A model generated the notes under the pieces. It was given only the letters and a program-made list of their open reading frames with translations, had not been told where the DNA came from and made no database searches. A program made the translations under genes and the position numbers. Shown piece by piece: positions 8,294 to 64,000 of a stretch of DNA of 64,000 bases; within the stretch, counting starts at the first letter, position 1; each line of letters opens with the position of its first letter. Origin of the DNA: Oopsacas minuta. Taxonomy: Eukaryota > Animalia > Porifera. The stretch spans positions 581,068 through 645,067 of the forward strand of contig JAKMXF010000122.1 of the NCBI GenBank assembly GCA_024704765.1, given 5' to 3'.

Positions 8294-8766
8294 TAATTAT
8301 GTTAAACATTGGTCTGGAATCAATAGCTGAGATAATTTGAACGCTTGACTTGTCTCTATCTGGACACTATTATGAAGGTCTCGGGAACGAAGAAATTTAA
8401 TCGTGTTCACATCAAAATCCTTCAAAGTTCAGGATGTCAACATGTCATTTCATAAAGGACATTTAAGGAAATGTTGCGAAGTGCCAATCCGAAGTCACAT
8501 CGATACCCAAGATTCTCACAATATGTCAGTTAGATTTAGCATCTTTACATAGATATTAGCAGACAATGAGACAAAAAACCGAGATTATTTACACATCAAG
8601 TCCGATATTCATGAGACTCCGATTTTCTCGTGATATTCGGCATCTCTGATTGTGATTACTTAGTTGGTCCACATACATTCAATATTGAACAACTAATCTG
8701 TGTGTATATATAAATTTATAGTAACTTACAAGTGATTGAATGTAATTTCAGATCTAATTAACTAAC

Positions 8767-9016
8767 CGAAAACTGGTGTGTTGTCATTAACATCCAAAAT
8801 CGTAATAGTAACTGCTTTTGAAACTTCACGGGGATTTAAGGCGTTATCATCAGCTCTAACAATTAAGACATAACTAGGGTAAACTTCAAAGTCAGGAAGA
8901 TTATTAGTGGTGAAAATTTCGCCAGTATTGGCATCTATTCGAAACACACTATCATAGTTTCCATCGATAATAGAAAAAGTAATTACATTACTTGTGTCCA
9001 AATCTCCAGCACAAAC
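8767..9016 (-). CDS. Cadherin-repeat gene, sixth exon (250 bp, phase 0/1)
   Basis: Acceptor CTTTTTAG and donor GTTAGT. Encodes VCAGDLD..FSIIDGN..FRIDANTGEI..PDFE..LDVNDNTPVF. Confidence 0.92.
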
Positions 9017-19084: not shown

Positions 19085-21774
19085 CAGGGTTCTATCTAGG
19101 ATTTTAAATTTGGGGGGGAAGCTTTGAAATCCTTAGTACCCAATTATCAAAATATTATAACCTTGAAGTAAACACCAAACATTTAATCTAATCCTTAATA
19201 ATGAAGATTTCTATCGTTAGTAAAACATGAAAGGGCCGCTCATAAATTGATTTTTCTAATTTTCATTCCTTTATAATGCTCCAATACTGCCTCTAAATTT
19301 TCATCAGATAGGTGATCAGGACCTTCAATACATATGCGCATACAATAATCAAGTGTCTCTTCACTCATTCGACTGCGAAGTCTCGTTTTTATTAATTTCA
19401 TATTGCTGAAACTCCTTTCGACTGTGGCTGTTGTCACTGGTAATACTTCCAAAATAGCGGCTATCTTTGCCAAGTTTGGAAATGCAGCATATATCTCTCC
19501 ATTCCCCAGCAGTCTTGAGAGTACAAATTGTAAGGACCTACCTTTGTACTGTAGGAAAATTAAGCGTCGAAACAATTTCCACTCTGACTCAGTTTCTTTA
19601 GCTTCGATGTCAGGCTGTGATATACCTTCATTTCCTCCTACATTGATCCTTTGTTCTACACTATAAAAATCCGTGAGTGTCTTAATCTGTTCCATTCCGT
19701 ACTCTGATAATTCTTCTTCTCTACCAGGAAGATGACGAGGGTCAAAAACAGACATGGCTGAAATGAGTTCAGTAGACTCCATCCGGACATTAATATGATC
19801 TATGACACTTTGGAGGTATGGTCGATATACCTTGTGAAGAAATTCACTCTTCTCTTCTTCCAATACCACGATGTGTTTCTCTCCTAATTGAGCATCATCA
19901 ATAAAAACCAAAGAATGTTCCTTGAACCATGTGCTGCTTGTTACATCTTCTTTGAGCTCCAACAGCCGTTTAGTAGTACTAGCAACCATCGATGGCACAC
20001 TCGCAAGATCAATATCCTTGGCTTGTAGACTTCCTTGCAATTTCGCTACGATATGAAGAACATCTGATAGCATGTAAATACATGCGACAGTCTTGTACTT
20101 CAATAAGAGAGTTGCAATTCCATGTGATTCTGCATCCCCAGTTTCTGCGTATATCTCTTCAAATGTACTGACCAAAGCTGGTAAACTCCGTCGCACAACA
20201 GACACAGCTCTCTCACGGGCTAACCACCGAGTATCACTAGGCTTCTGCATTTTGATTTCAGGAGCCTGAAGTTCAGCTTGAATCTCAGCAAGTTTCTCAG
20301 CTTTTTTGGGAGAAAAGTGAAAAGCCTTCCAGATTGTTAATAGTGTACCCAAAACTCTCTTCACTACTGTATGTTCTGATGCAGCATTTAATGCAGCAAG
20401 TTGAAGCTTATGGCAGCGACAGTGCACATAGATAGAGCTTGGTGCATGTAATCTTAGCCGTATTTGAACACCACTTCTGTGACCCGACATAGTATTTGTA
20501 CCATCAAAACCAAGTCCACGCATCTTATCAAAACAAATGTTTTTGGAATGAAGAAAAGTTCGAAGGTAACAAGCGATCGCTTGAGCATTTTTCTCCTTCG
20601 CATGCAAAATTCCAAGAAAATGTTCTACTGGTTTATTATCTTCTATCCAACGTGCACATACTGACAACTCTTCTTGTGATGCTACATCCGTACTTTCATC
20701 TGCCATTAATGAATAATATGGGCTAGCACTGAGACTGGTGATGATCCTCTTCTCGAGTACATTGCTAATACTTGAGAGAAGTTCCACTATAGTGGTATAT
20801 GATTCATATGTCGCATTGTGTGGACACTTCTCTCTGTGAGATTTCAGTATGATGTCCCCATTCTCAATTTGTAAAGTAATGAGGTTTTCAAATGTAGTTG
20901 TATGGGGGATATGATGCTTAACCAAGAAATATAAGGATCGGATAAGCTTTTTCATAATGTCACGGTTCTGTTTCTTCTCCTCCGCAGTGGCTGCTTCCAA
21001 TTGTTCCATTACATTACCATGTTCCTCTGTTGATTGAGACATAACCATTCTTTCGATCGCTGCTGCGTGCCAATCAGATTTCTCATGTTGTATTAGCAAA
21101 CTTTTCGCCTTCACCCAATTGTTTATAGGTCTTGTCACCCATGCACCTCTCGCTTGTACCGGTGGTTTACCATGGACCTTACAAATCGTACACACCATAC
21201 CATTTTGGGATGAATCGTAGTCCATCCAAGTATATTCATTCTTCCAAGTAGGATTATAAACTAAGTTGTCCTTGTAGGCTCGCATTTTTTTGGCTGTTTT
21301 AGAAGCGCATGGAGTAGAAACAATCGCATCTTCCTCTGGTAGTTGTGGTTCAGACTCAGATATATTGTTGCAATCCGAAATATTTCTTTTAGTTCCTCGA
21401 ATGATAACAAATTTATCCATGTGGTAACACTGGGTTAATCAATTATTACCTATGTGAAGTTAACAAAAAGAATTTTTCCGCTGTATTATACCTCAAGAAT
21501 TCGTACATCACTAATATATAGGCGGCTGGATAGTGGGAAGCTGTACTTTCCAACATATGTTATTATTTCGCAGTTGCAAATTGTATGAAATGTGATTCAG
21601 GTTTCCCACATATTATTTATTTACACTTCAAATAGTATTTTCACAATGAATTGATATTCTAATAATTTATCCATTGAATAATATATTGCGATTAATAGTA
21701 CATTTTATGAGATTTTTGGGGGGAAAGTTGAAGAGTTTGGGGAGGAAGCTTCCCCCCCAGTAGATAGAACCCTG
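19085..21774 (-). mobile_element. Full-length hAT element with 5-bp TSD (hAT5-like), 2690 bp
   Basis: 14-bp TIR CAGGGTTCTATCTA plus subterminal GGGGGGGAAGCTT at both ends. AATAC directly flanks both ends. Confidence 0.9.
19240..21420 (-). CDS. hAT transposase (ZNF862/ZMYM-like), 726 aa, intact
   Basis: TTF-type Zn finger (CTIC..HEKSDWH), ADESTD, GFDGTNTMSG, HCRCH, DTRW and C-terminal TTATVERSFS dimerisation motif. Confidence 0.93.
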   Translation of the reverse strand: MDKFVIIRGTKRNISDCNNISESEPQLPEEDAIVSTPCASKTAKKMRAYKDNLVYNPTWKNEYTWMDYDSSQNGMVCTICKVHGKPPVQARGAWVTRPINNWVKAKSLLIQHEKSDWHAAAIERMVMSQSTEEHGNVMEQLEAATAEEKKQNRDIMKKLIRSLYFLVKHHIPHTTTFENLITLQIENGDIILKSHREKCPHNATYESYTTIVELLSSISNVLEKRIITSLSASPYYSLMADESTDVASQEELSVCARWIEDNKPVEHFLGILHAKEKNAQAIACYLRTFLHSKNICFDKMRGLGFDGTNTMSGHRSGVQIRLRLHAPSSIYVHCRCHKLQLAALNAASEHTVVKRVLGTLLTIWKAFHFSPKKAEKLAEIQAELQAPEIKMQKPSDTRWLARERAVSVVRRSLPALVSTFEEIYAETGDAESHGIATLLLKYKTVACIYMLSDVLHIVAKLQGSLQAKDIDLASVPSMVASTTKRLLELKEDVTSSTWFKEHSLVFIDDAQLGEKHIVVLEEEKSEFLHKVYRPYLQSVIDHINVRMESTELISAMSVFDPRHLPGREEELSEYGMEQIKTLTDFYSVEQRINVGGNEGISQPDIEAKETESEWKLFRRLIFLQYKGRSLQFVLSRLLGNGEIYAAFPNLAKIAAILEVLPVTTATVERSFSNMKLIKTRLRSRMSEETLDYCMRICIEGPDHLSDENLEAVLEHYKGMKIRKINL

Positions 21775-22543: not shown

Positions 22544-23017
22544 ATTTCTGGCTATATTAAATCGATTGTGCCCCCCTCCCCACATATTTTAGAATAATCC
22601 GCTACTGTGGCTAAGCACAACGTTTATGAGATAAACAACACATAATTAGCTTATGATACTTTGTCCATTAGTAATAAAACTAATAATGGTAGCTAATTTA
22701 TTTGAATTAATGTAAGTATTCAATTGAAAACTTTCTAACCCAAATAATTCTGAAGCAGTTAAGAGAAATAATTTAAAGATTCGAAGTTACCACAGTAGAT
22801 AGAGACTAATGTGGGGCCAGTGGGGCTTGTCTTCTAGGTCTCAGAGAAGCGGAAATTTGTCAATAACTGACAAAAGCCATGTCTTCAATATGTCTATTAT
22901 TCTGAGACTCCCTATATCGAAATAGAGGGGCCCGTTCGAAGGACTAGAACAAATATATATTTATCTCTACTACGTACTTGAAATAATCATTATCAACAAA
23001 CTACTCTACAAAATAAC

Positions 23018-23244
23018 CTTAGCAACTAGCTCATCAGGATCACTGGCTTCAGATACTTCAAAAGGAAGAGGAGGAGAGAAACAATCAACAAAGATAGGTG
23101 GATGTTCATTACTGTCCTCAACAATAATTGTAACTATAGCACTTCCAGTCATTTGGGTTCCTCCAGCATTATCAGTCGCATGAACAGTGAATTGAAAACT
23201 AGTATCTTGCTCATAATCAACCTTCGTATTCAAACTAATCACAC
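23018..23244 (-). CDS. Cadherin-repeat gene, fifth exon (227 bp, phase 1/0)
   Basis: Acceptor TTCTTTAG and donor GTTATT. Encodes GVISLNTKVDYEQ..HATDNAGG..VEDSNEHPPIF..LVAK. Confidence 0.9.
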
Positions 23245-23452
23245 CTAAAGAAACAGGATAAATACAAAAATAATATAATATTGGAAATAAAGTAAACCAT
23301 AGCCTTCTCTATATAGGGGCTACCATGAACCTCGAATTTTTGGGCTAGGGATATAGTAGCGTACGGTATATAGTATGTTAGTATATAGAATGTATTCATA
23401 TAATACAAACAATAGTTTATGCCCAAGTAAATATACAAGGGTTGTTCAATAA

Positions 23453-24654
23453 CACAGTGTAACAACTTTTTGTTTATTTGGTTATTTACCTGTTTTTGGA
23501 TAATTCTGACGTGAGGAATTCGAATTTGACTGTGCTTTTAATGTATCATCAATAATTTTAGTGGAAATGTCAAATTCTACTTTTTTGATTTTCTCTTCAT
23601 ATTACCCATTATACATTGGCATGACATTATATTCATTTCAAATATTGATTTACTTAGATAAATTGTTGTCTACAGATTGTATTTGTTGATGGCTGCCAGG
23701 AGAATTTGTAAGCTGTCACCAGATTCGTTTTGCTATGTGTGCGGATACTAAATTGGACCAAGACAAGTCAAGCATAATATAACACCCGGTACAAAATTGT
23801 GTATTGCGTATTATGCCTATTTTGGCATGCCAATGGGTGATCAAGACAAAATGTGGTCTCCTCACTTCTGCTGTGGATCATGTCGTTCCACCTTAGAAGG
23901 ATGGCTACGTGGAACCCGAAGGCGTATGCCATTTGCAATACCTCGAATTTAGAGAGAACCAGTTAACCACCATGATAACTGCTACTTTTGTATAGTAGAT
24001 ATTACAAAATATAAAGGAAAAAGAAAAGATAAAAAACATATCGTTTATCCGAATATTCCATCGTCTATTGCCCCAGTGTCGCACAATGAAGATCTGCCAA
24101 TTCTGATTTCTCCTTTCTTAGAAGGAACTGTTGAACCTGAGTACATATCTTCTAGTAAGGAAGATTATATCAGCTTCGACGAAGACTTATCATGGGAACC
24201 ACATTTTCCTAATCAGCAAGAACTAAATGACTTGGTCAGAGAATTAGGTCTGACAAAATCTAATTCGGAGCTTTTGGGATCTCGTCTCAGAGAGTGGAAT
24301 TTACTTGATCCTAGTTGTAAGATATCTATCTACAGAAAACGGCATCATAATTTTGCATCTTTCTACAAATATTCGCTTTCCAATTCTTTGTGTTACTGTT
24401 CTGATGTGGATGGCCTTTTTGACGAGATTGGTGTGGAATACAACCCTTCAGATTGGCGTCTCTTCATTGATAGCTCTACAAGAAGTCTAAAGGGTGCTTT
24501 GCTTCACAATGGCAATGAATTTCCAACCGTTCCCCTAGCTCACTCAGTTCATTTAAAGGAAAATTATGACAATGTGAAACATATGATGGAGATGATCAAC
24601 TATCAAACACATAAATGGGATGTTTGTGGCGACTTCAAATTGCTAGGATTTTGA
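23453..24654 (+). mobile_element. Chapaev3 element, 5' half (3'-truncated)
   Basis: TAA then CACAGTGTAACAACTTTTTG at the 5' end. Transposase motifs FCYVC, MPFAIPR..REP..H..CYFC, ELLGSRLREWNLL, WRLFIDSS..SLKGALLHNGN, VCGDFK. Confidence 0.8.
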
Positions 24655-25112
24655 ACAATCATTATTCAATATATTGAAATATGAACTTACTATTGGAGAA
24701 CAGCAGAAAAACGAGGATATCATTCGGAAAAGGTACATCAAATGCTACTAACAATACCTGCAACCTCAGTCGAAGCGGAACGAGCATTTTCTTGTTCAGC
24801 ATATTTATGCAACAAATTTAGAACAAGACTCAATGATAGCACTTTGAATACGCTAGCATTCATAAGGATCAACAAGGAAAAAATTGATGATAAACTAAAA
24901 AAACTTATTATTCATTCATATTCACCTTGTACCCCCATATTATAATTTCATTCTACAGACTATCATATAATTAAACAAATTTAACTATTGCTCGAGAGAT
25001 AACTATCATCATTTATCAAGGGATTCCCAGAAATTCCGGGGATCCCGGGATTTTAAATGTGGAAATCCCGAAATCCGGGGATTATAAAAAGAGTCCGAGA
25101 TTAAAAACCTTA
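24655..25112 (+). mobile_element. hAT 3' end fragment
   Basis: PATSVEAERAFS..RTRLND dimerisation motif followed by ATCCCG repeats and a TIR-like AAAACCTTA. Confidence 0.7.
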
Positions 25113-27216: not shown

Positions 27217-27570
27217 CAGTAGAAACCAGGGATGACATACTTTGTGTATACAAAATTATAACTCAATAATCATTAAAAGTATTGTCAAATCAGGATAGCC
27301 TCTTTGTAATAAATGCCCAACTTCACATACCCTGATAATACACTTTGATATGATATCTCTTACCAGTATGACGTAATCGTGAAATTATCAATTTAAGGTC
27401 ATTTTTACATTACCTAATAAACTTCAGAGTTATCATATCAAAATGTATTATGACGGTATGGAAGTTGAGTATTTACTACAAACTGGCTATCCTGATTAGA
27501 CAATAATTTTCTCGATTATCGAGTAATAATTGGATAATCAGAAAAATTATGCCATCCATAGTCTCTACTG
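27217..27570. mobile_element. Small foldback MITE
   Basis: Arms CAGTAGA..GGATG(A/G)CATA and TGTC.AATCAGGATAGCC..TTTGATATGATA are inverted around a ~80-bp spacer. Confidence 0.65.
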
Positions 27571-28768
27571 TTACTCAACAAAGAGCCAATTTTGTATTAC
27601 AAATTTGGATATTTTGTACAAAAGTATTCATAGATCATTTAATGTATTCACTTAAGAGATGAAAGATGAATATATAACGTTCTATATCTATAAGGCGTAA
27701 AGTAAAGACATATTTACCAAATAAATGCTGAAACTACCCTCTGATCCATCTCTATCACTTCAATCAATCAATCAATCAATCATTGGATTAATACCTGAGA
27801 TCTGACGCCAAATGGAAATTGACTCCAACTCGACCATGGATAGAGCTAAAGTCAGTACATCAAAATAGTTCAAAAATTACTTACAAAATGGAATGTATAA
27901 AACAATTAGAAGAAAAGGAAAGTTAATTTCGGATTGTCTATGTCTCATGATTGAATAAACGTTCTCCAAAAGCCCAAATGATTCACAAGTTTCCTTCCTT
28001 ATATTGTGCGTCTGTGGTTCCATACTAGAAGTCCAGTTATGCTGAATGCTCTCGTTATATAATCACTACTGAAGCGTGGAACTTCCAGATATCAGATCCG
28101 TAATATACAGCTAACATAGGGCTTCGCCCTGCTTATGGTTTGTCTTACATATTTCTGTACTTTTGTACGTGAGACTTTTATCGAGCTTGACTCCTAGTAA
28201 TTTAACATTAGGCTGATGTTATATAGTTGTATTTCATACTTTGATTAAAGGTCTTAACTCTTGAACTTTTCGAAACGTAGGCGTGCCACAATGAGACTAT
28301 CCTCTGTGTTTTGTCATCATTTACTTCAGGCCAAGTGGATGATAAAATTTTTGTGACTTGCTGATATGCAATTCTGCATTTGATAAGATATCTTGTACAC
28401 ATTCAGAGAGACTATCAGACTAATATCATCGGTAAGAGAACTTTAGCAATCCTCCATTATTGATAGTAATTTAGTCTGCAGCTAAAAAACATTATCGATC
28501 GCCAGGCACATCTTTCACGGGTCTCTCAGAAAATCATATTGATCGAAAAAACGAGGTCCTTGAGATTTTTCATGATTCTTGTGTAGAATTTTGCGTAGAA
28601 TCCGATTCTGTTGCCAAAAAAATATTTCTCACACAAATTTTTGAGTTATTTTATATTTTTTTAGTTCCCATTTTTATATGTTGTCGGGTTGCTAATTTAT
28701 CATATTAGAATCATCGTTATCACTCATACATTGAATATAATACATCCATCAGTCACATATAGAATAAA

Positions 28769-29926
28769 TTAAGTACTTATAAAATTAACGAAATTAATTT
28801 CCTTGACAGCATTTAGTAGGTTTTCGCCGTAATTTTCTAGAGACTCGCTACATTGATAATTTCTCCAAACTTTGATGAATCGAGAATGAGCTGATTCAGC
28901 TGCCTGCTCTGAAACGGCGCCCAATCCCATACCAACTGGAAGGAATTTGGTGATAAATGGGATAACATGTCTGCACACTATATGGACTTTTGTTGAACAA
29001 TTCAGCCCAGTTAATTTGAATGCTTCTTCAAATTGAAATATCGCCAGTTTGTAATCACCTTGTATCTTTTGCCCAAAACATGTCCTCACTACCTCTGAAA
29101 ATCGCTTTAAAGCAATGCTGGATGAGTTGCTAATTGGAAAACCAATCTGCTCAACCATCAATGTAATTTTCCGCATTGCATTACCTTCAAATGCGCCTCC
29201 ATGGTAAGAACTTCGAGATATGTTATTGTGCTTCAGTAATAATTCATGTGTAACTAACTCTTCTTCAGACATTGTAGCCACGATCGCATTGTACAACTTC
29301 TGACCAACCCCTAACAAAAGATGTAACTCGGGAATATTGAACATCTGCATGTAGTCAACCATCCATACACCAAGAGCCTCCATATCTTCTACACCATCAC
29401 AGTCAATCGCATGATTCTTTGAGTCGGAGTTATATTCTTCACACAATTTTTGGTACATCTCTGCATGATGTGCTGATGATCTTGATTTGAATTCGACATG
29501 ATCCAATCCACTTTTAGCATCCCATACACACCAAATGCATGGGTAACGTCCAAGCATAATACCCAGACAGAGAGCAGCGGCTTTGAGATCAAAGGTAAAA
29601 GATACGTTGTACTCATGAATAAACTTTTGAATTTCCGGGGCATTCAGTATTATAGAAAAATTGTAATTATTTTCAGGAGCACTTGATACCCATAAGAAGA
29701 TTAGATTTCGCACAGAATTTTCCAGTTGTAGACACATGACAAGCTTAGTGAACCCACAACCATAATCAAGGCCAAGCTTAAAATTGAAACTGTAAACTGA
29801 AGATTCTCCGCTAATGTTGTAGACTTTTTCTATCAGTTTGTCGATGTTGCAACAGCGTACGACCCAAGTCTTTCTGATATCAGAGGAATACTTCTCTTGC
29901 TCCATTCCAGATCTAATTGGACGCAT
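28769..29926 (-). CDS. Chapaev transposase catalytic core, N-terminally truncated (385 aa)
   Basis: LGLDYGCGFTKL, FDLKAAALCLG..PCIWC, PELHLLLG, YHGGAFEGN, TKVHIVCRH, SEQAAESAH. Upstream coding continues in another frame to 30013, then is replaced by the inverted copy. Confidence 0.8.
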   Translation of the reverse strand: MRPIRSGMEQEKYSSDIRKTWVVRCCNIDKLIEKVYNISGESSVYSFNFKLGLDYGCGFTKLVMCLQLENSVRNLIFLWVSSAPENNYNFSIILNAPEIQKFIHEYNVSFTFDLKAAALCLGIMLGRYPCIWCVWDAKSGLDHVEFKSRSSAHHAEMYQKLCEEYNSDSKNHAIDCDGVEDMEALGVWMVDYMQMFNIPELHLLLGVGQKLYNAIVATMSEEELVTHELLLKHNNISRSSYHGGAFEGNAMRKITLMVEQIGFPISNSSSIALKRFSEVVRTCFGQKIQGDYKLAIFQFEEAFKLTGLNCSTKVHIVCRHVIPFITKFLPVGMGLGAVSEQAAESAHSRFIKVWRNYQCSESLENYGENLLNAVKEINFVNFIST

Positions 29927-30572
29927 TCGAATATATCATCACAATATTGTTTCCGTTCGTCGTAATAGTCCTTCATTGATGGACAGGCCACGCCAGCATC
30001 CCTTATTACTTTGGTTACATCTTTTGTTAGGGGTTGGTCAGAAGTTGTACAATGCGATCGTGGCTACAATGTCTGAAGAAGAGTTAGTTACACATGAATT
30101 ATTACTGAAGCACAATAACATATCTCGAAGTTCTTACCATGGAGGCGCATTTGAAGGTAATGCAATGCGGAAAATTACATTGATGGTTGAGCAGATTGGT
30201 TTTCCAATTAGCAACTCATCCAGCATTGCTTTAAAGCGATTTTCAGAGGTAGTGAGGACATGTTTTGGGCAAAAGATACAAGGTGATTACAAACTGGCGA
30301 TATTTCAATTTGAAGAAGCATTCAAATTAACTGGGCTGAATTGTTCAACAAAAGTCCATATAGTGTGCAGACATGTTATCCCATTTATCACCAAATTCCT
30401 TCCAGTTGGTATGGGATTGGGCGCCGTTTCAGAGCAGGCAGCTGAATCAGCTCATTCTCGATTCATCAAAGTTTGGAGAAATTATCAATGTAGCGAGTCT
30501 CTAGAAAATTACGGCGAAAACCTACTAAATGCTGTCAAGGAAATTAATTTCGTTAATTTTATAAGTACTTAA
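29838..30572 (+). CDS. Chimeric ORF: antisense-derived N-terminus fused to the duplicated Chapaev C-terminal half (244 aa)
   Basis: From LHLLLGVGQ onward the translation is identical to the 385-aa ORF. Expression is unknown. Confidence 0.4.
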   Translation: MSMLQQRTTQVFLISEEYFSCSIPDLIGRIRIYHHNIVSVRRNSPSLMDRPRQHPLLLWLHLLLGVGQKLYNAIVATMSEEELVTHELLLKHNNISRSSYHGGAFEGNAMRKITLMVEQIGFPISNSSSIALKRFSEVVRTCFGQKIQGDYKLAIFQFEEAFKLTGLNCSTKVHIVCRHVIPFITKFLPVGMGLGAVSEQAAESAHSRFIKVWRNYQCSESLENYGENLLNAVKEINFVNFIST

Positions 30573-31073
30573 TTTATTCTATATGTGACTGATGGATGTA
30601 TTATATTCAATGTATGAGTGATAACGATGATTCTAATATGATAAATTAGCAACCCGACAACATATAAAAATGGGAACTAAAAAAATATAAAATAACTCAA
30701 AAATTTGTGTGAGAAATATTTTTTTGGCAACAGAATCGGATTCTACGCAAAATTCTACACAAGAATCATGAAAAATCTCAAGGACCTCGTTTTTTCGATC
30801 AATATGATTTTCTGAGAGACCCGTGCTTTGAGGTACACCATGTGTCGGAGTAAATCCTTTAGTAGTACTTTCTCCTATTTTGACAACGCATTTCCGACTA
30901 GTGACATAGCTAGAACATAAAGTGCCAACAAGCCTGCAGATGGTTTAAGTCCCCCTTTTCTATCCAGCATAATGCTGAATTTATGGCTTTTATGATTGCC
31001 AGACATGTATCTCGGTGTTTTCTAAAGTCAAATTGGCAGTCATCTACCAGCCCTATGTCTCTAGATATTCCCT

Positions 31074-34000
31074 CACAGTGGCACGAAATGGTCAGAATGT
31101 GGAAATAGGCATTTTGATGGCACATAGGTCCTCAAAATGTATTATTGCCATATAGGTTTTCGAGCCCAACGAATCGAATGGGATACTCATTTTTTCTCTA
31201 TCCCTTCAGGTGACAAAGTTATGACGTCATTGTCACCTATCTGAGGTGTGAAAATTCCCAAAATTTTCTATTAATCGATTGAGAGGTTTACTTTTAATCA
31301 TCATTATGATCTTCATGATCACGAATAAGGGTGTTCACTAAAATATCTTGGCTACTTCTAAGTCCTTGGCTAGATGGAGGCCTTGGAATAGAAAACTTGC
31401 GATTCATTAACAGCATGGGATCACTGTGAGAAATCAATCGAACAAATACATCCTTTAAATTTTCTTCAAATGAAAACTTGCGAGCAAGACGATCTCTGTA
31501 TCTCCGAATATATTTGTTAGAAGCCTCTAGTCCTTCTTCAGATAAGTTCTCTAGCCCATGTCCATCATTAAACGTTGAGATGATTTCCGGTGCATGTGCT
31601 AACAGTTTGTGTAACGTCGGGGAAACATTAGCCCAAGGAAATGCACAGAGAATTGACTGGTAGATATTACTGCAAACAAGCGCTAGTTCTTCTGTATCCA
31701 CTCTTCTGCTGCTATTATAGACGCGTAGGATTGCTCCTAGGCATGTGTGAATTTCAATTATGTGGGACTTGAACTCAGACGGGATCACTGTCAAAACCCA
31801 GTAGAGGAAATCTTGATCGTTGTCATCCTTTCTTATCAAGCATCGTCTTACCACATTACCAGTAGTCGTTGTGCCACCTTGTGTTGAAGGGATGTCAATA
31901 ATAATATTGAGATTGTCTTTAATTAAACTTGTAACGAAAGTTTTAGCATCTGAGACTCTCTTAGAAGTTGGTGACCACTTAAATACTCCTGCGTGCAAAT
32001 GGCTAATTAGATGTAAAAACCAGCCAAAACATCGGAGATATGCATGCAAAGGCGAACTGGGTATGATTTCTAAGTCAGATATTGGTCTGTGTGTAACGTT
32101 GAATCTGTTGTCAGAAGATAATGATAGAAACTCCTCTTCGTTAACTTCATCAAATAATACTTTCAGGTCTGTGATGGATCGATTAATTGGAAAACCGTCT
32201 TTTACGATATCCGGATCATGGATTTGTTTGAATGTCGCTGTACAGAACTGGCAACATGCACCCCCAGCTCCACTAATAATCTTAGCCATTTTGCCATCCA
32301 ATTGTGAACGTTGAATTTCAACTTCACAAAATCCGCTTGTTAGTTCTAAACCCTTTTCCGTTATCTCTGTGGACTCCTTATTGATTAGTGTATCCATAAG
32401 ATATCGAATATTGTCTTCGTTCTCCTGTAGAGCTAGTATCGCAACGGGTCTAATTGAGAAAGGAGAATTTGGTAGAGGGTTTTTCCAAATCAGTTTGTTA
32501 TCGGTGTCGGATATGGAAATCACCTTAAACCCGAATAAAATAAAACTTTTTGTTGAAATATTGGGGTGAGTCGCTTGCTGATAAACCCGGTGAGAGCCAG
32601 AACCGTCAAGTCCATCTGAAATTCGTATCCTTTGAGGATTGCTGGCGCTGGGAATTTCATTGGCAGAAGCAGTCAATATTCTGTTTACTGTATGAGTCAG
32701 AAGCTTTTTGTAAGATACAGCAATGCCTACCCGATGTTCTCGATCAACTGAAAAGATGTCATTAGTCAAGCAAATTTGAGATCGATAGGTAGCTAATCGA
32801 TTGTAACCTGGAAGCTGGACATCTGAAAGCAATAATCGTCTTAAATCGATGTATTTCTTCTTTCCAATTTCTAAAGAATCCATCAAGAACGCAGCTTTAT
32901 CGCAGGTTAGTTTATTGCAGACTGGACCGAAGCTTCCCTTAGCAATAATTTCTTTACGGAACTTGGTAGTAGTAAAGTCGTATTCAGTCTGTGAACATAG
33001 CATCATCAGGTAACAGGATAGTTCTTTACTGGAAACATTCTCTTGTACAGCAACCTTTTCAAGATGTGTTAGTAAGGAGGACAATCGGCTGCGAAGACCT
33101 TTAGTTGATAATTCCCTCAGAGGCTTACGGGTGGGCTTACTAAAATCTTCTTCGAAAACAGAGGTTGATTGGCTAGAAGAAACACTCCCTATCACCATGA
33201 CTTCATCTGAGCATTGATAACCTGTACTCAATCTCGGGTGTTTAAGTGGTGTATGATATGGTATCGCATTCCAAGTAGTTATATCGGCTCGTTTCAGGTA
33301 TTCTCTCCTATCTTCTCTGAGGGTCGAAAATTTTCTCCGTACTGTATCATGCTCTGTTTCTTCCAAATTATTGAGGACAATAAACGAGGACGCGAGAGAA
33401 GTGATTGTTTTATTCTTTTGTGCAGTTAAGAACGTGTATGCATCTTCGTTATTCATAATGAAAAATGTGCTAATAAACAACCACAACAATTATTTATGAT
33501 TTATATGGGCCAAAAATTAGATAATTGTGAATGGATTATATTTAAAATCGCAAAAAAAAATATCGTTGACACTTCCTGATACCATAATTTAAAGTGTATT
33601 TTGTAGAGGACGAAAAGAGCTATTAGGAAAGTGCAATGGAAAGTTCCGCAAGTGAAGGCAAAAAAAGTACTAGAGTTTTAATGAAACGTGTTTCTATTTA
33701 TTGCACTTGTACGAACAAGCTTGTTTAAAATGAGAATAGTAAATTCCATCTGTTCATTGGAGCCAAGATTAACGTGATTTATTATTCAGCAACATAAGAG
33801 CTTTCGATTGGTATACTATAAATAGCAGTTATTTGACGTGGAGAATCCATATTATTCAAAATTACATCATGACCGAAAATTGAAACCATAAATCAATCTT
33901 TCGAATTTCAATTATGCTCTCATTGGAATAGACGTAGGAGCTAAATGGAAAGTCTATTGTAGAGATGTCAAATGTTTTCCGAGGTTTGTGGGGGTGCTGA

Positions 34001-34074
34001 ATTCAAATATCAACACTATAAAGCAATTTGAGGTTATATTTTTTTCACCTATTTCCACATGCCGTGCCACTGTG
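31074..34074 (-). mobile_element. Full-length Transib / RAG1-core-like transposon (3001 bp)
   Basis: Both ends begin CACAGTGGCACG and carry an inner ATGTGGAAATAGG block. Perfect 5-bp TSD TCCCT (31069-31073, 34075-34079). The empty site restores a LINE RT motif. Confidence 0.95.
31294..33489 (-). CDS. Transib transposase / RAG1-core-like protein, 731 aa, intact
   Basis: Catalytic DDE motifs GLDGSGSH, QLDGKM and SEEGLEASNKYIRR. Zn ligands CQFC and LHKLLAH. SPLHAYLR and TGNVVRR also present. Confidence 0.92.
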   Translation of the reverse strand: MLWLFISTFFIMNNEDAYTFLTAQKNKTITSLASSFIVLNNLEETEHDTVRRKFSTLREDRREYLKRADITTWNAIPYHTPLKHPRLSTGYQCSDEVMVIGSVSSSQSTSVFEEDFSKPTRKPLRELSTKGLRSRLSSLLTHLEKVAVQENVSSKELSCYLMMLCSQTEYDFTTTKFRKEIIAKGSFGPVCNKLTCDKAAFLMDSLEIGKKKYIDLRRLLLSDVQLPGYNRLATYRSQICLTNDIFSVDREHRVGIAVSYKKLLTHTVNRILTASANEIPSASNPQRIRISDGLDGSGSHRVYQQATHPNISTKSFILFGFKVISISDTDNKLIWKNPLPNSPFSIRPVAILALQENEDNIRYLMDTLINKESTEITEKGLELTSGFCEVEIQRSQLDGKMAKIISGAGGACCQFCTATFKQIHDPDIVKDGFPINRSITDLKVLFDEVNEEEFLSLSSDNRFNVTHRPISDLEIIPSSPLHAYLRCFGWFLHLISHLHAGVFKWSPTSKRVSDAKTFVTSLIKDNLNIIIDIPSTQGGTTTTGNVVRRCLIRKDDNDQDFLYWVLTVIPSEFKSHIIEIHTCLGAILRVYNSSRRVDTEELALVCSNIYQSILCAFPWANVSPTLHKLLAHAPEIISTFNDGHGLENLSEEGLEASNKYIRRYRDRLARKFSFEENLKDVFVRLISHSDPMLLMNRKFSIPRPPSSQGLRSSQDILVNTLIRDHEDHNDD

Positions 34075-40285: not shown

Positions 40286-40889
40286 CATCTCGGTTAGGTC
40301 CCATTCATGCGATGACGTTAGCATCTATATAGGTTGACTATTTTCTCAAATGTTTTGGAAAAATGGTATTTTATCTAAATATATGCTAGTATCTTTTGAA
40401 TTGGTTCTTGCAATTACCACTGAAGATAAATACCCATATGACGAGAGTTTATTGGAAGAAAAATTTGTCAATTTACAAGATGGACATGGAAATAACATGT
40501 GGTAAGAAATCGATTCTAAAGAAATTCGCCCATTATTTAAACAGTATGAATGAATAGGAGATATAAATTCAAAGAGATACTATAATTATAAAAAGTTAAA
40601 AAGTCACTTTGTCGACGATCGATTATGTAAATTATGAAGTCATGATTTGAATGCGCCTAAACCAGGATGGAGGGTGGATGTTTGAACTATTTATGTAGTC
40701 TTAACTGATTCCTTATTATATCTTTGTACTCTCAACAGTGCTACCTCGATTATTCGAACATGCCTCAGTTCCCAGTTCCCATTCCATGTATCAACAATTC
40801 TTGGACTATACGGCAAAACCAAGGAATAAACGATCATTTGCATTGGCATTTCACTTTTCGTACATAAATCTATTAATATTCGGTCTAAC

Positions 40890-41145
40890 CTGTAGTAGGC
40901 TCTAAAGTGAATGGTAAGGTGGATGTACCAGCGATCGTATACACGAAGATCCCATCAGATGTAGAAGAGTCGTCTGCATCATTTGCAGTAACTTTTCCAA
41001 TTATAAAGGTTATTTCCTCCTTCTCATCCATATAGAAAGTATACTCTACGAGTGTAAACACAGGAGCATGTTCATTAATGCCAGTGATTATGAGGGGCAG
41101 TGATAGGGTTGCACTACGGGTACTTGGACGACCTCTGTCAACGAT
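40890..41145 (-). CDS. Cadherin-repeat gene, fourth exon (256 bp, phase 0/1); absent from the ORF track
   Basis: Hand translation: IVDRGRPSTRSATLSLPLIITGINEHAPVF..GKVTANDADD..FTLEPTTG. Acceptor TCATCTAG and donor GTTAGA. Phases match both neighbouring exons. Confidence 0.9.
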
Positions 41146-41300
41146 CTAGATGAAAAATATATATGGACAATGAAAAAGAGTACAAAAGGGCAATACAAAG
41201 TGAGGATAATTGCAATGTAGAAGTGAATTTGGTGTCATTGCACAAGTGTGCTTGTAAATACACGAAAATCGCTTAACACTGCAGAATATATATAATAAAT

Positions 41301-41301
41301 C

Positions 41302-41331
<30 letters not shown>
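41301..41331. repeat. (TA)n microsatellite
   Basis: Direct reading. Confidence 0.85.
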
Positions 41332-41332
<1 letters not shown>

Positions 41333-41584
41333 CAGCAGTGGCGGAACTACACACGGGCCTACCCGGACCTATGCCCAGGTAAATGAGGATTGTGCTCTGG
41401 TACAGGCTGCGGTAAATAAATTTGTCCTGAGTTGCTAAGGTCTTATATAGGTGTCATTCTAATTCTAGATTATTCATAATTCGATATTTTAACTAAAATG
41501 AGACCGTGTCACCTTATGTTAATATTGAGCGTCATTATACACAATGTCTTAGTTGAATTTTTATTAACCCATATGCTATAACAA

Positions 41585-43421
41585 CACTACATAACAAATT
41601 TTTGTTTGGATTGATATTTTGATTGTTTATGGATAATTTTCAGGCGCTGATTCCAAAATGCAATTAATTTTTTTCTATCATCGATCGTTAACTTTCAGGA
41701 AGCCTATTTATATGAGCAGGTTACACGCTTAGCCAACCCAGCAAAAACGTACGTCACAATCAAAATCTTTTGTGCTATAACACTAAAGATAACAAACATT
41801 TTGCACTCCCTTCACTGTCTCTTGTCTTTTTAAGCTTGGGTAGGATTGCAAAACTTAGAAATTTCGTTCTTGTGTATAGTTTATTTGCTGTCCAGTACCT
41901 TCACTTGGAAAGTATTTACTTACATCAATAGTATAAGCTACCAGCAGCTAGTATAAGCATCAGTATAACTGCCTTTAGCAGAGAAGGCAGAAACCACTTG
42001 CTGGTTGTTCTTACGTTAAGTTAGTGTTTTTCAAAATTAGAAATTGTAATGGCTGGTAGACAATGCAAGAATTCACCTGACTCATTTTGCTATGTTTGTG
42101 GGTATTATGTTGGTGGCGAATATGTTTCAAATTAAATATCAAAAGAAGCTAAGTATTGGGAAGCGTATAGACTGTATTTTGGGATGTCCATTGGGGACAA
42201 GGAAAAGGCCTGGGCCCCACATGTGATTTGTGGCAGCTGTCGATCTAATCTTGAAGGTTGATTGAGGGGTTCCGCTAGAGTTATGCCATTTGCTATTCCA
42301 AGAGTTTGGAGAGGGCCACAAAACTATCATGATGATCGTAACTTTTGTATGATAAATATTGCTAAGTACCGCAAGGTTAAGGGAAGAAGAGCACTGACTT
42401 ATCCAAGTATACCTTCATCCATTGCACCTGTTCCTCACAGTGAAACTTTACCAGTTCCAAAACCAGCAGCAAATGTAAGTAGTTTTATGTTTTATAATAT
42501 TAGGCTACGCTAGCTTATATGCTGTAAGGGTGACTCACAATCTGCATCTTATGTTTTATTCTTGTCATTTTAGTTAGAGTTTAATACTGAATGTGAAGAC
42601 TCGATATCGAGTGAAACTTCGGATGCTGAGGAGGAGTATCCCCAATCAACAGGTGCAGTCGTCACTATCCTTCTAAGAGAGAATTAGATTACTTAATACG
42701 AGATCTGCAACAAAGAAAATCTGCAGCAGAGCTATTGACGTCAAGATTAAGCGAGTGGAATTTGCTGCGTGATGATTGCAAAATAACTGCTTACAGGAAG
42801 AGGCACTTGGACTATTCTGTTTACTTTGATGTAATACAGGATCTGTGTATTGCAAAGATGTGAATGGTTTGTTTGATGCTGTTGGAATAGAACATGACCC
42901 TTCTCAGTGGCACCTTTTTATTGACAGTTCCACCAAAAGTCTTAAAGGAGTTTTACTTCATAATGGGAACAAATATCCGTCAATTCCACTTGCTTATTCA
43001 ATACAAATGAAAGAAGACTATGAAAATGTCAAGCAAATACTGCTTAAAAGGGAGGAATATTTGTTGGCCCCCAAATAACCACCATGTTAAAGTCAAGAAC
43101 CCTGGAGGATAAAATGACCGAAACAGAAAGAAAAGCATGGCAGGCATTTAGAGGTGTAGTTAATGGAATTTTAGGAAATATCTAAGATCTTAATTATGAA
43201 GAGATAGTGAAAATTCTGATCACAAGCTACCAAAAGATGGGATGTCGCATGTCTTTGAAACTTCATTTTCTATGCTCTAATCTTGACCTCTTTCAAGAAA
43301 ATTTGGTGATTTCAGCGAGGAACATGATATGGAAAAACTAACACAATTTTTGAATTCAGCGACACAAAAACATAAGGGGACATCAAAAATTGAAGCCTTA
43401 CAAAAATTGTGTTACGTAGTG
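41585..43421 (+). mobile_element. Chapaev3 element, internally deleted (1837 bp)
   Basis: TIR CACTAC(A/G)TAACA(C)AATTTTTG, flanks CAA / TAA. Motifs FCYVCG, MPFAIPRVWR, HLFIDSSTKSLKGVLLHNGN, MGCRMSLKLHFL. Likely intron from GTAAGT at 42475. Confidence 0.85.
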
Positions 43422-50198: not shown

Positions 50199-51508
50199 CG
50201 AAGGGCACTCGAAAAGTTTTGTCGTTTGTTATCAAACCACAAGTATTTTCTAATAAAATTATTTTATATATATTTAGATGCATATTATTTATCTACATAA
50301 CAAATTTCATCAGTTTATCTTTTGTACTTTTCGAATTGCATGATTTCTAAAAGCTATGGCTTGTATGATTCCTCAACCAGAATCTGACCTCACAAGACGC
50401 GATTTTAGAGCGATTATTTTAATTTTGTTCAAACTTGAGAAGAGCCGTTTGGAAATACACGAAACTTTGCAGAAGCACTTCCCAAATATAGCTCCTTGTT
50501 TGAGAACAGTAGAGCGATGGTACTCAGAGTTTATTCATGGAAATTTTATTCTTGAAGATGGTTCCCTTCCTGGTAGGCCCAGTATTACACATACGGTCGA
50601 AAATGTAGAGCTAGTGTTGGACGAAGTAACAAAAGACCCTCATGTTACTTACGCTCAGTTAGAACATGAAACCAAATTGTCCTCGGGGAGTATAAACGTC
50701 ATCTTACATAAAGAGCTTGGTCTTAGAAAGTTATGTGCACGTTGGATCCCGCATTCTTTGTTGTCCGATCAGAAAACGTGCCGAGGGGACTTTTGCAAAA
50801 TTATGCCTAAAAGATTTGTTAATGGAACTTCTAGAGCTGTTTCTGAAATACTCACAGGCGATGAGACATGGATATACCACTATGACCCAGAAACGAAGAG
50901 ACAATCTAAGGAGTGGGTCGAAGAAGGTGGTTTACCTCCAACAAAGGTCCGGAGAATTAGATCAGTCGGAAAGCAGATGTGGGCGATTTTCTTTAGACGT
51001 AGTGGATTTGTTGAAGGAATTGCACTTGAGGATAGGAAGACAGTCACCGCTGATTGGTATACCACAATATGTCTTCCGAAAGTATTCAGTGCTATCGAAA
51101 AACAACGTGAGAAGTCAGGTGTCCGAGGAATCCTGCTTCACCACGATAATGCTTCATCACATGCAGCACTAAGAACTCTTGAGTTTTTAGAGAATTCTAG
51201 GATCGGAACGCTATTCCACCCATCCTACAGTCCAGATCTAGCCCCTTGCGATTTTTGGTTGTTCCCAAAGCTGAAAGATCAACTTCGTGGGAGGAGATTT
51301 TTCAGCAATGAAGAGTTGACCGGGGCACTTTTCTTAGCAATTGAGGAGATACCCAAAGAAGAATGGAAAATGTGCTTTGATACCTGGTTTACACGCATGA
51401 AAAGGTGTATAGAGTGTCAGGGCGAGTATTTTGAAAGAATGTGACCATATAATATGTAATACCCATTATATAAGTATATAAACGACAAAACTTTTCGAGT
51501 ACCCCTCG
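50199..51508 (+). mobile_element. mariner element, full length (1310 bp)
   Basis: 29-bp TIR CGA(A/G)GGG(C/T)ACTCGAAAAGTTTTGTCGTTT (2 mismatches) and TA TSD. Confidence 0.95.
50356..51444 (+). CDS. mariner transposase DD34D, 362 aa, intact
   Basis: WIPH, TGDETW and HHDNA-34 residues-YSPDLAPCDF motifs. Confidence 0.95.
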   Translation: MACMIPQPESDLTRRDFRAIILILFKLEKSRLEIHETLQKHFPNIAPCLRTVERWYSEFIHGNFILEDGSLPGRPSITHTVENVELVLDEVTKDPHVTYAQLEHETKLSSGSINVILHKELGLRKLCARWIPHSLLSDQKTCRGDFCKIMPKRFVNGTSRAVSEILTGDETWIYHYDPETKRQSKEWVEEGGLPPTKVRRIRSVGKQMWAIFFRRSGFVEGIALEDRKTVTADWYTTICLPKVFSAIEKQREKSGVRGILLHHDNASSHAALRTLEFLENSRIGTLFHPSYSPDLAPCDFWLFPKLKDQLRGRRFFSNEELTGALFLAIEEIPKEEWKMCFDTWFTRMKRCIECQGEYFERM

Positions 51509-54613: not shown

Positions 54614-55091
54614 CTCACTGTGTATATATACACATAAATCAATTGCGTTTAATAGGATAGATTATTTACATAGCGAGCTATTGTTTGGCCCCACCTCTTA
54701 ACATTTGCATCCTGCGCCCATGTCTACGTTCAACTATGACAGAAGTTCGAAAACAAGACGAACTACTCTTGATTGATGCTGCCAAATGAATTTGTTTGAG
54801 GTTCAGAATTCTGTCAAACCATATCTGTTCATGAGTTAAAAAAACACTAGTCACTATGTGTAGCTTTGAAGGATTTTCTAACCAGCAACATAGCAACCTA
54901 GGTTGCTATATACAAATCCTAGTAACCACATTATCCGAGACGCCAAATAGGTTGCTGGTTAGAATGATCCTTTTTGAAACACAAAAATAATTCATGACAA
55001 AATGGCAGGTCTGTTCCCCTACTTTATATAGGGTTACGACGTCACTGATATGTATTATTACAGTCATCAAACTATAAGCAATATAACTAAC

Positions 55092-55360
55092 AGTTATAAC
55101 CAAAGGATAAGATTTTTCACTTTCAAAATCAAGGAGTGATTGTAATTGTACTGAAGCTGTTGAAGATCCATCTGAATATACAATTGCAAATTTAGTGAGA
55201 GGCGGTGATATTGAAAAACCACTTGATTCCAAGGTGAATTCAGGAGTGGATGAATTTTGATCTAAGTCCAGTACATCTAAAGTGCAAAAGACACCAAGTG
55301 GACGATTTTCCGGAAGAGTCTGTGAGCAAGATGAAGAAACTACAAAAGAAAGTATATTCA
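55092..55360 (-). CDS. Cadherin-repeat gene, third exon (269 bp, phase 1/0)
   Basis: Acceptor CCTGCAG and donor GTTAGT. Encodes LPENRPLG..DVLDLD..LDFESEKSYPLVIT. Joins in frame to IVDRGRP of the next exon. Confidence 0.85.
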
Positions 55361-57257
55361 CTGCAGGACATAACCAATTCTATTACTTACTATTAAATAG
55401 ATCCAAGAAATAAATCAGAATAGATATCCTTTTCGAGGATCGGAAGAGGATTGTGATCGGGATCGGATCTATACTTTCTCAAAGATCCCGATCTTCAATG
55501 CAATGAATGTATCCATAAATTGTAGAGGTAATAAAAGCAGCCTCATGCATAAATATAACCTAATTTTCCAGAAATTGTTGTAGCCAACATATTCGAGTGG
55601 CAACTCAAACGAAGCGAAATTTGATTTAATGTCTTCAAATGTGTCTAAAAGTGGCACTTCAAAGTGGCAAATACCAAGCTATTTATGATGGATTTTAATG
55701 AACATTTTTTTAGTATTAGTACACATAGCAAGGAGTTTTCTGTGAGGAAATAGTACTGTATTATAAACTTCAGAGATGAGCACAAATTATTGGTAGATTG
55801 ACTGGACCATAAATGCATATTGTCATTTGTTTATTACCCAATTGTTTTCTTAGAGCACTGTAAACTTTTGCAAGATTTCAAACTGTTGCCCGTGTGATTT
55901 CCCAGTAAATTGAGATTAAATAATCCCCATCCGAGAGAAGTATACCGTATTTCTATGAATATCCGCCGGGGAATTAACATACATGAAATACACAAGCGTT
56001 GGCCCATTATTCAGGGAAATAGGGTAATTATATTTCTGCAATCAGTAATAACGTGTAGTATATGAATAACTAGGCCAAATAAATTAAAGAAATTTTCTAA
56101 CCAAATTGGAACGTTTTGTAAAGATATAAAGATTATTGAAATTCTGGATTTAACACATATACCTCTATAATATTGCAGTAAAACCTCCAAAAATTGAAGA
56201 CTTCCGTAATATGAACAATTTTCTCGTCCCAAATAATTTCTATTCCTTTATACAGTGTGATGAAACTTATGAAAGTGAGCACCTCTCACCAATCAAAATT
56301 TTGGCAGTTCACTTTCCATGTTTTTCTGAATATTCATTTGGGAAAAATTCCACAGATTCTGAAATAGAAAGTCACACTATTTACTATTCGGTCTGGCCAC
56401 ATATCTGAGGTTCATTTTCTAAACCTGTGCTATGGCCTATAAGTATTATGTAGGCCAGGGTAATTCGCAAAGAAATATAGCCATTGAAAGCAGGTTCACG
56501 TATATGCATGTTTTAGAATTTAGATAATAATACAATATTACTGACCTGGGCCATGAACTTCGATATGTATATACAGCCATATCACTGACCATAATTTCAT
56601 GCACCATGGATTACTTAAAGTCCATAAATTTGAAAGACAATAATATTTTTCACAACACTAGAACATTAGTGCATTTTGGTCGAATAAATATATTATTCAA
56701 AGTTAATAATTAACACAAGCTGTCATTTAACTAATCCCAGGAAAAAATGACGTGACATACTTGGCTAAAACAGGAGTATGTTGTCAATGAAGTGCCTTTT
56801 TCCAGCTCTGTCAGTTGATCAATACTCTGCCGTCGAATGTATAATTATCACCAATTGATCCAACTATGTTTGTTTACAAAATATCAAATTATTGCCAAAT
56901 AAAGTTTTCATGTTACAGTTTTACAGTGGATGGCACATTTTTCCAATATCACCAATAACTGGGGTCTCTATAATTCGGGAACCTCTGTCAGAGGGGTAAT
57001 TTTAGTCCAGCTTCAGTCATTTCCATAGAAACTGACCAATATAAACGATAGCGGGAAATGGAGAATGGGCGCCATATAAGATATTATTATGTCTCACACC
57101 ATTAAATTTACCTCGATAGGTGGGAGATTTCTTGTATAATGAATTATTGTGCGAATTATGGAAAAATATGTATTTATCGCTATGATGAATTTAAATCTTT
57201 GGGTTTCTTAGAAGAAAATTAGTACAATTTTTCATATTTTAACTAATAACCCTAGGG

Positions 57258-59315: not shown

Positions 59316-59543
59316 ATCAGGGGTGGGCAAACTTTTTCTGCGGGCCGTATTGACCTACGACTATGTTCCATGTTCAGATATATTAGGAAAACTTACTAGC
59401 TAATTGTAAAATAAACAATAATTATTCATACTAATTAACCAATATTGTTAATGAGAGCAATGCAGCTGATTCTGCATATATTAGTTTGTCAAAATTGGTA
59501 GTTTCTACGCTCAAGATAAGAGTTGATAGATTACTCAACTTAC

Positions 59544-59822
59544 TTGTCAGAGATGGAGCATTGTCATTGATGTTTTCCACATAGATTGTGAGACCTACAG
59601 TAGCTGGGTTTATGCCATCTGAAGCAGTTATAGTAAGTTCCAAAACTGCAAGATCTTCGAAATCTAAACTTTTAGATGCGGTGATAATACCAGTCCCAGA
59701 ATCAATAGTAATATATTCCAAAGAATCATCACTTGTGGGAGGCTTATTTTGAAGAGAATAAGTAATTCGTGTATTCGCATCTTCAGGACTCTCAAAAGCG
59801 TGTACTTGTATTAGGGTTTCGC
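59544..59822 (-). CDS. Cadherin-repeat gene, second exon (279 bp, phase 1/1)
   Basis: Acceptor TTCGCAG and donor GTAAGT. Encodes ITYSL..IDSGTGII..LDFE..TASDG..VENINDNAP. In frame with the previous exon. Confidence 0.92.
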
Positions 59823-60000
59823 CTGCGAATGTAAATGTAAAATAATATGTAAATATTAAGATGTGGCACAAATTATTCTCATTTCAATTTATGAGTGTGA
59901 AGTTAACTTAATGTCAACTGACAGACAGAGAGGTTTCAATACATGTGGAAATACATTTGGAAAAAAATCCACAATTTTACTCTCGACCTTTAGTAGCAAC

Positions 60001-63512: not shown

Positions 63513-63679
63513 GTACAAACTTTGAGAATTTTTGGCTCGTATAGTGCATTTCGTCGTATTATAGAAGTCTTCAGGATTTTACAGGTGTCGGTTTATGCGG
63601 GTCCCATTGTAGATACAAATACCATAAATATTTAACACAGGTAGTAAAATATAGAAGTATATCAACAAAAGGAACTCAC

Positions 63680-63865: not shown

Positions 63866-64000
63866 CTATAGAAACGGAATTTAAGGAATAAAATAATCAA
63901 TTCAGTATTATTACTATGACTCTCTTAGTCGAGGAATAATCAAGGAAGAAATAATATTTAGCCCTAAAGATCATTATACAGAATAAGTAATTACTCTAAA

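Follow-up and report, generated by a model that had tools for sequence, protein, structure and literature searches.

The 64,000-nucleotide stretch of the genome of the glass sponge Oopsacas minuta analyzed here (contig JAKMXF010000122.1, positions 581,068 to 645,067; hereafter, the window) carries a foldback transposon at positions 28516 to 30825, both ends of which derive from the same end of a parent element. The combined evidence makes it probable that this foldback is a genuine nonautonomous derivative, with two 3' ends, of a young and probably active Chapaev-type DNA transposon, with gap repair as its most likely origin.

A repeat search of positions 27500 to 31800 of the window recovered one inverted repeat, consisting of arms of 812 nucleotides (nt) each (28516-29327 and 30014-30825) that are 100% complementary and lie 686 nt apart. 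A perfect inverted repeat of this length is beyond chance. As read from the sequence, the element starts with CACGGG at 28516 and stops with CCCGTG at 30825, and CTTT stands directly outside both ends (28512-28515 and 30826-30829). In addition, the peptides of the two arms are identical by tblastn, with the plus strand of the right arm encoding once more the last 185 residues of a 385-amino-acid (aa) open reading frame (ORF). The exact alignment of the arms and the matching flanks bear out the sequence-only reading, an earlier description of this DNA, which had reported an 812-bp inverted duplication of the 3' half of a transposase with a target site duplication (TSD) of 4 bp, CTTT, around the whole unit. 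The foldback is 2.3 kb long, keeps 415 transposase codons, and is organized as follows, TIR denoting terminal inverted repeat and UTR untranslated region.

28512-28515, no strand: left copy of the TSD, CTTT, matching 30826-30829
28516-29327, minus strand: left arm, the element's genuine 3' end, with TIR and 3' UTR at 28516-28768 (253 nt), the stop codon, and codons ~477-661 of the transposase, among them the catalytic-E motif SEQAxESxH; parent nt 2005-2836 in colinear order
28516-28648, no strand: TIR region (CACGGG...), with the 3' variants at nt ~99 and ~115, the diagnostic positions of the TIR comparison with full-length copies
28769-29926, minus strand: 385-aa ORF of an N-terminally truncated transposase, spanning most of the loop as well as the left arm; 378 aa from 29905 in the public annotation
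29328-30013, minus strand: single-copy loop with transposase codons ~247-476 (D330, D389, CxxC) and a private frameshift near 29899; parent nt 1318-2004
30014-30025, no strand: inner junction of the inverted duplication, inside the microhomology GTTACA/TGTAAC; parent nt ~1306-1317 versus the reverse complement of nt ~2005-2016
30014-30825, plus strand: right arm, where the 3' end is repeated in inverted orientation in place of the 5' third (5' TIR, 5' UTR and putative zinc-finger N terminus), as indicated by the repeat search, tblastn and the TIR bases
30826-30829, no strand: right copy of the TSD, CTTT, as read from the sequence

The parent family, eight further copies of which were taken for comparison from the O. 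minuta assembly GCA_024704765.1, measures 2836 bp and encodes a 661-aa transposase. Four copies (L002, L008, L010, and L011) span the full length of about 2816-2836 bp and have an intact ORF of 661 or 664 aa, a fifth full-length copy (L009) has a broken ORF, and two others (L001 and L012) are rearranged. The left arm and loop of the foldback are colinear with nt 1318-2836 of the full-length copies. Parent nt 1-1317, comprising the 5' TIR, the 5' UTR, and codons 1 to ~246 with the putative zinc-finger part, are absent, and the right arm stands in their place, in agreement with the earlier statement that the 5' end and N terminus are missing.

The family copies are 97.6 to 99.5% identical to L002, and nearly all 24 members of the protein cluster at 90% identity that contains the transposase come from O. 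minuta; the family is therefore young and probably active. When compared to the family consensus, the sole private change of the foldback is the deletion of 1 bp near 29899 (AAA to AA), which causes a frameshift. Since only this deletion and an allele of a 19-bp indel that is common to L009 and L011 separate the foldback from the consensus, it is as young as the intact copies. The indel itself is located in the A/T-rich 3' UTR (window position 28663; parent nt 2670-2688). It is found in the foldback, L009, and L011, the remaining copies (L001, L002, L008, L010, and L012) being without it, and marks two sublineages of the family.

The TIRs of the five full-length copies show how far the arms of the foldback depart from the family norm. 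Their first 98 nt are identical between the two ends, and similarity is gone by about 133 to 165 nt; in L002, L008, L009, L010, and L011, the TIR spans only ~108 nt with 98% matching positions. Because the TIRs of the full-length copies fade by about 165 nt, arms of 812 nt are abnormal for this family. Constitutively long TIRs of the Foldback or Galileo kind, as well as the proposition that autonomous members normally have ~800-bp TIRs, are thus rejected for this family on the five full-length copies, with TIRs of only ~100 to 165 nt. The two ends of a full-length copy can also be told apart, since all five carry T at nt ~99 and C at nt ~115 of the 5' TIR and C and T, respectively, at these positions of the 3' TIR. 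Both ends of the foldback are 3'-type at nt ~99 and ~115, and the 3' sequence runs on for 812 nt, so the claim that both ends are the element's 3' end stands.

Chapaev elements are recognized by a 3- to 4-bp TSD and invariable 5'-CAC ... GTG-3' termini (PMC4079192), and their DDE core is related to that of Transib and RAG1 (PMC4411706) and to the CMC group. The foldback and all eight copies examined have CACGGG...CCCGTG termini. A perfect 4-bp TSD flanks four of the eight copies (CTTT in the window, TAAG at L001, GATA at L010, and ACGG at L012); the flanks are alike at three of four positions in L009 and L011 and do not match in L002 and L008. Across 29 aligned homologues, invariant columns include D330, D389, E616/E620, CxxC, and several His residues. 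Moreover, a profile comparison of the family with a neighboring RAG1/Transib-like ORF (31294-33489) gave a probability of 92% (E value, 5.6e-7) and paired the second D, the CxxC and His motifs, and the SE..ES motif, in agreement with the placement of Chapaev beside Transib (PMC4411706). The full-length relatives also share conserved Cys/His columns in their N-terminal 155 residues (C12, C15, C57, C60, C100, C103, C139, C142, H152, and C154). The CAC...GTG termini, the 4-bp TSD, and the DDE core are features that the family has in common with the Chapaev superfamily (Kapitonov & Jurka 2007), and this cysteine-rich N terminus of full-length copies may correspond to the complex zinc finger ("Chapa") of Chapaev transposases.

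A search of 1.8 billion representative proteins returned 964 relatives of the 385-aa ORF at an E value of ≤0.001, the closest named matches being hypothetical proteins of O. minuta. The full-length relatives are 650 to 730 aa long, and the 385-aa query covers only their C-terminal ~380 residues. Pfam assigned no family to the 385-aa ORF or to full-length relatives, a PDB sequence search with the full-length protein returned nothing meaningful, and neither Pfam nor PDB gave a match that names the domain of the cysteine-rich N terminus. Since the family is represented neither by a Pfam model nor by a solved structure, the Chapaev label rests on these hallmarks. The sequence-only reading had called the element a Chapaev, which the termini, TSD, and RAG1/Transib-related core support, and we classify the family as Chapaev-type by its hallmarks rather than by likeness to a named Chapaev transposase.

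The inner junction of the foldback points to the way in which it may have formed. In transposase orientation, the window reads ...AAAAGATGTAAC/CAAAGTAATAAGG at the junction (marked by the slash), the parent upstream of nt 1318 reads ...AAAAGCTGTAAC/CAAAG, and the parent at nt 2005, reverse complemented, reads ...AAAAGATGTAAC/TCGGG. The two parental sequences share a microhomology that is inverted within the parent, with 6 bp perfect (GTTACA/TGTAAC) and 11 of 12 positions matching overall. A hand check showed that the polarity of two nascent strands would be compatible with a join at this site, the strand from the left flank ending in ...GTTACA and that from the right flank in ...TGTAAC, which are complementary.

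The proposed pathway would start with the repair of a double-strand gap left when a full-length copy was excised. From the right flank, one new strand would first copy the outer TIR, the first 98 nt of which are the same at both ends, then re-anneal to a 3' TIR, and proceed inwards through 812 nt of 3' sequence, while a strand primed from the left flank would copy the true 3' part over 1.5 kb. Both strands would then anneal by their 3' ends at the 6-nt inverted microhomology (TGTAAC/GTTACA) and be joined, with the outcome that the 5' TIR, the promoter region, and the putative zinc-finger N terminus are replaced by a mirror copy of the tail.

This scheme is the one published for Goblin, a miniature inverted-repeat transposable element (MITE) of Aedes aegypti derived from the Tc1/mariner element Ozma (Yang et al. 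2013). Both subterminal regions of Goblin come from one end of its parent, and its breakpoints show inverted 6-bp microhomologies, for which a TIR-to-TIR template switch during synthesis-dependent strand annealing, and then microhomology-mediated end joining (MMEJ), was proposed (PMC3814204). The foldback likewise has subterminal regions from one end of an identified parent and a short inverted microhomology at its junction (6 bp in Goblin, 6 and 9 bp in the two Oopsacas foldbacks described here), and the published model of template switching and microhomology joining fits its junction polarity. However, Goblin is a miniature element of another superfamily, with 54-bp TIRs, that has been amplified into a family, whereas the Oopsacas foldback, known from a single locus, is 2.3 kb long, with arms of 812 bp, and retains 415 transposase codons.

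Two further copies in the genome are rearranged at their ends. A second foldback of 1673 bp (L012:2479-4151; JAKMXF010000326.1) joins the reverse complement of parent nt 2259-2836 to nt 1727-2836 at a 9-bp microhomology, GTATCTTTT. Its arms measure ~576 nt, both of its ends are 3'-type, and it is flanked by a perfect ACGG TSD. The first 14 residues of protein P0188, a member of the same cluster encoded at this locus (292 aa in the public annotation), are antisense-encoded. An origin of the two L012 arms from different alleles, which would show ectopic templating, was rejected, the arms differing only by one T in a run. The L012 foldback arose independently of that in the window. The third rearranged copy (L001:4819-6638; JAKMXF010000155.1) consists of TIR nt 1-35, followed by the terminal 56 nt in inverted orientation and by parent nt 1099-2836, with a TAAG TSD; it thus carries an 85-bp terminal mini-palindrome, the junction of which shows the microhomology GAAAAA. 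Since the window foldback, L012, and L001 make three rearranged copies, end template switching is evidently frequent in this family.

The window locus offers a clean and datable case of a cut-and-paste transposon becoming a long-armed foldback, with parent, product, and junction microhomology all visible, and the junction evidence, together with the second independent foldback in the same genome, supports the mechanism of formation well. To our knowledge, no foldback derivatives are known for Chapaev. The two foldbacks extend the template-switch/MMEJ model of MITE and foldback birth to another superfamily, the little-studied kin of the RAG1 ancestor, and to another phylum, represented by a hexactinellid sponge.

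Several points weigh against this account of the foldback. Its structure is known from a single assembly, a SPAdes/PacBio hybrid (PMC10280926). The 100% identity of the arms is partly built in, since both become one edge in a de Bruijn graph, and the nonmatching flanks in two of the five full-length copies (L002 and L008) indicate that some repeats may be misjoined. Furthermore, we infer the repair pathway from the junction alone, and fork stalling and template switching or microhomology-mediated break-induced replication (FoSTeS/MMBIR), or else priming by fold-back with later excision, could be expected to produce scars of this kind as well.

The most serious alternative concerns the place of origin. 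The foldback could have formed elsewhere and then transposed into its present site as a unit, making the CTTT duplication on arrival, for which we see a roughly even chance, if anything slightly below it. The perfect TSD, the two 3' ends with predicted transposase competence, and the presence in the genome of at least four intact 661-aa transposase genes speak for it. The foldback itself is without a complete transposase, and with two good ends it should be mobilizable by such intact copies. The sequence-only reading had gone further and taken the TSD, together with the restored target, to mean that insertion at this site occurred in the rearranged form. This conclusion does not follow, because gap repair of a full-length insertion at the site keeps the original TSD, which therefore does not discriminate between the two origins.

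The search for other copies with the same central junction also came out negative among annotated ORFs, database proteins, and paralogues covering the breakpoint. An exact-protein look-up of the two annotated ORFs of the foldback matched this locus only, so no further locus encodes its proteins. Homology matches of the junction-spanning 244-aa ORF cover its sense half only, with no database protein spanning the junction, and the parental sequence is kept in each of the 11 annotated paralogues that extend across the breakpoint. A 32-mer across the junction and a 30-mer of the TIR each gave 0 matches in the JGI metagenomes, a weak blank given that this collection is without the O. minuta genome. 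While these results count against transposition as a unit, cut-and-paste transposition need not raise the copy number and would be compatible with a single copy of the junction.

A second alternative is an assembly artifact, in which the assembler followed a false path through the collapsed repeat graph and the true locus is occupied by an ordinary copy. For the O. minuta assembly, SPAdes (k up to 99) combined Illumina reads with PacBio reads corrected by Canu, pilon served for polishing, and the Illumina and PacBio libraries come from different adults (PMC10280926), which favors such an error. The identical outer 98 nt of the TIRs equal the largest k-mer of SPAdes (k = 99) minus one; therefore, the graph alone cannot tell a 5' from a 3' end at the flank. 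The flanks of L002 and L008 that do not match point in the same direction. However, the junction shares only 6 to 12 nt with the parent, so k-mers of 21 to 99 across it must exist in the reads, and it has the microhomology signature of a biological event. The second foldback, L012, has a different junction and its own perfect TSD, the arms end exactly at the element ends beside a matching TSD, and palindromes from missed PacBio adapters would have no 686-nt loop. We therefore regard an artifact as unlikely.

Finally, local hopping is common among cut-and-paste elements, and two copies could have inserted head to head, or nested, and later lost their 5' parts by deletion, but this very improbable scenario was rejected on the TSD and the end types, given that the outer flanks carry the same CTTT and join into one continuous sequence and that both ends are 3'-type with arms that show no differences. 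Under this scenario, the outer flanks would stem from two distinct insertions or from a 5' end.

The surroundings of the foldback bear on its possible expression. In the window, Cadherin is the best Pfam family for six ORF pieces, all on the minus strand:

63582-63896, minus strand: cadherin ORF piece, Pfam weak
59434-59883, minus strand: cadherin ORF piece, Pfam above cutoff
54909-55379, minus strand: cadherin ORF piece, Pfam weak
40888-41145, minus strand: cadherin-like ORF piece nearest upstream of the foldback, Pfam weak (E value, 0.011); inside the public 89-aa model at 40885-42085
23009-23308, minus strand: cadherin ORF piece nearest downstream of the foldback, Pfam Cadherin at 29.5 bits, above cutoff; inside the public 111-aa model at 23006-24787
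8765-9016, minus strand: cadherin ORF piece, Pfam above cutoff

The foldback had been placed in a cadherin intron. The minus-strand cadherin ORF pieces on both sides make this position plausible; however, the public annotation around the foldback offers only the 89-aa and 111-aa fragment models, and no gene model spans it. The proposed target, a GVPQ motif of a long interspersed nuclear element (LINE), fared similarly. When the element and one CTTT are removed, ...THGVPQ... is indeed restored across the join on the minus strand, but Pfam finds no reverse transcriptase or other family in the restored 57-aa peptide. There is no other copy of the flanks in the window, and no LINE-like ORF is obvious among the flanking ORF pieces.

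The sequence-only reading had further predicted a double-stranded RNA (dsRNA) stem of ~800 bp. As far as folding is concerned, this prediction is supported: on either strand, the predicted RNA pairs 809 to 812 of the 812 arm positions, with a minimum free energy of about -1600 kcal/mol, and any transcript through the foldback would be expected to form an 812-bp RNA duplex. The locus might then act as a silencer like Mu killer of maize, with read-through from a putative host cadherin gene giving ~800-bp transposase dsRNA and small RNAs that would repress autonomous copies. The predicted pairing of all 812 arm positions, the minus-strand cadherin ORF pieces on either side, and the near-identical intact target copies in the genome are consistent with such a role, as are the structured, multimapping clusters of small interfering RNAs of endogenous origin (endo-siRNAs) reported on transposons in the demosponge Amphimedon (PMC6211395). 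On the other hand, the public gene models are limited to the 89- and 111-aa fragments, none of which spans the foldback, and at least four intact, near-identical 661-aa copies persist, so the family does not look silenced. Moreover, in one survey, small RNAs from transposable elements of sponges were like PIWI-interacting RNAs, transposon-derived endo-siRNAs having been argued absent from most phyla (PMC6085071), and the hairpin read-through model has been questioned even for Mu killer (PMC3440606). We consider a silencing function improbable and take the foldback as a neutral by-product of transposition by default. By itself, such an element is what an active DNA transposon can be expected to leave behind, and any regulatory role is hypothetical only.

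Mu killer (Slotkin et al. 2003/2005; Skibbe et al. 2012) nevertheless parallels the foldback in architecture, as it consists of a mudrA gene partly duplicated in inverted orientation and TIRA in two copies (PMC3440606). In Mu killer, the 5' end is duplicated (TIRA, 5' UTR, and ~1.3 kb of mudrA), and silencing was shown genetically. In contrast, the Oopsacas foldback duplicates the 3' end, belongs to another superfamily and kingdom, and is known here from sequence alone. The inverted duplications of maize Ac, which arise by alternative transposition and trigger siRNA silencing, are likewise rearranged copies of an active cut-and-paste element with inverted transposase sequence. They differ in that the transposase acts on the ends of different copies and flanking DNA is involved (bioRxiv 10.1101/2020.01.07.897926).

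A broader proposal is that the identical 98-nt TIR ends cause the family to yield foldbacks with two 3' ends repeatedly, with at least two independent cases, and that hairpins transcribed from them would provide a built-in small-RNA brake. This seems a long shot, somewhat more doubtful still than silencing by the window locus. If true, the hairpin brake would be the first counterpart of maize Mu killer in an animal, and the first in an early-branching metazoan. In any case, the foldbacks point to specific loci at which hairpin-derived small RNAs could be sought in sponges.

Some minor observations concern the family and its neighbors. The two intact full-length copies with nonmatching flanks (L002:3806-6641, AATT/AGAA; L008:1425-4253, TTAG/ACAC) possibly reflect either misjoined assembly flanks or recombination between copies. 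At L002:5001-8689, DIP2-like sequence is joined to the C-terminal 455 residues of the transposase in the public gene model KAI6647490.1 (595 aa; "Disco-interacting protein 2-like protein C-like"), which is either an annotation chimera or a case of transposon exonization. Two family copies that are 88 to 97% identical (L006 and L007), each with an internal deletion of ~90 to 200 bp, occur in an unrelated metagenome assembly (BUSC20-1, SAMN14422900; ENA ERZ23487945), the source of which is presumably a different glass sponge or a further sample of O. minuta.

Within the window, an apparently intact RAG1/Transib-like transposon (31074-34074) lies 244 bp to the right of the foldback. Its 731-aa ORF (31294-33489, minus strand) matches Pfam RAG1 (E value, 7.7e-6) and carries PF26100 RAG1_RNase_H in the public annotation. 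In addition, the window encodes a 726-aa hAT-type transposase (19240-21420, minus strand; DUF4371 and hAT dimerization domain) and a 362-aa mariner/Tc1-type ORF (50356-51444, plus strand). The putative cadherin introns are packed with DNA transposons.

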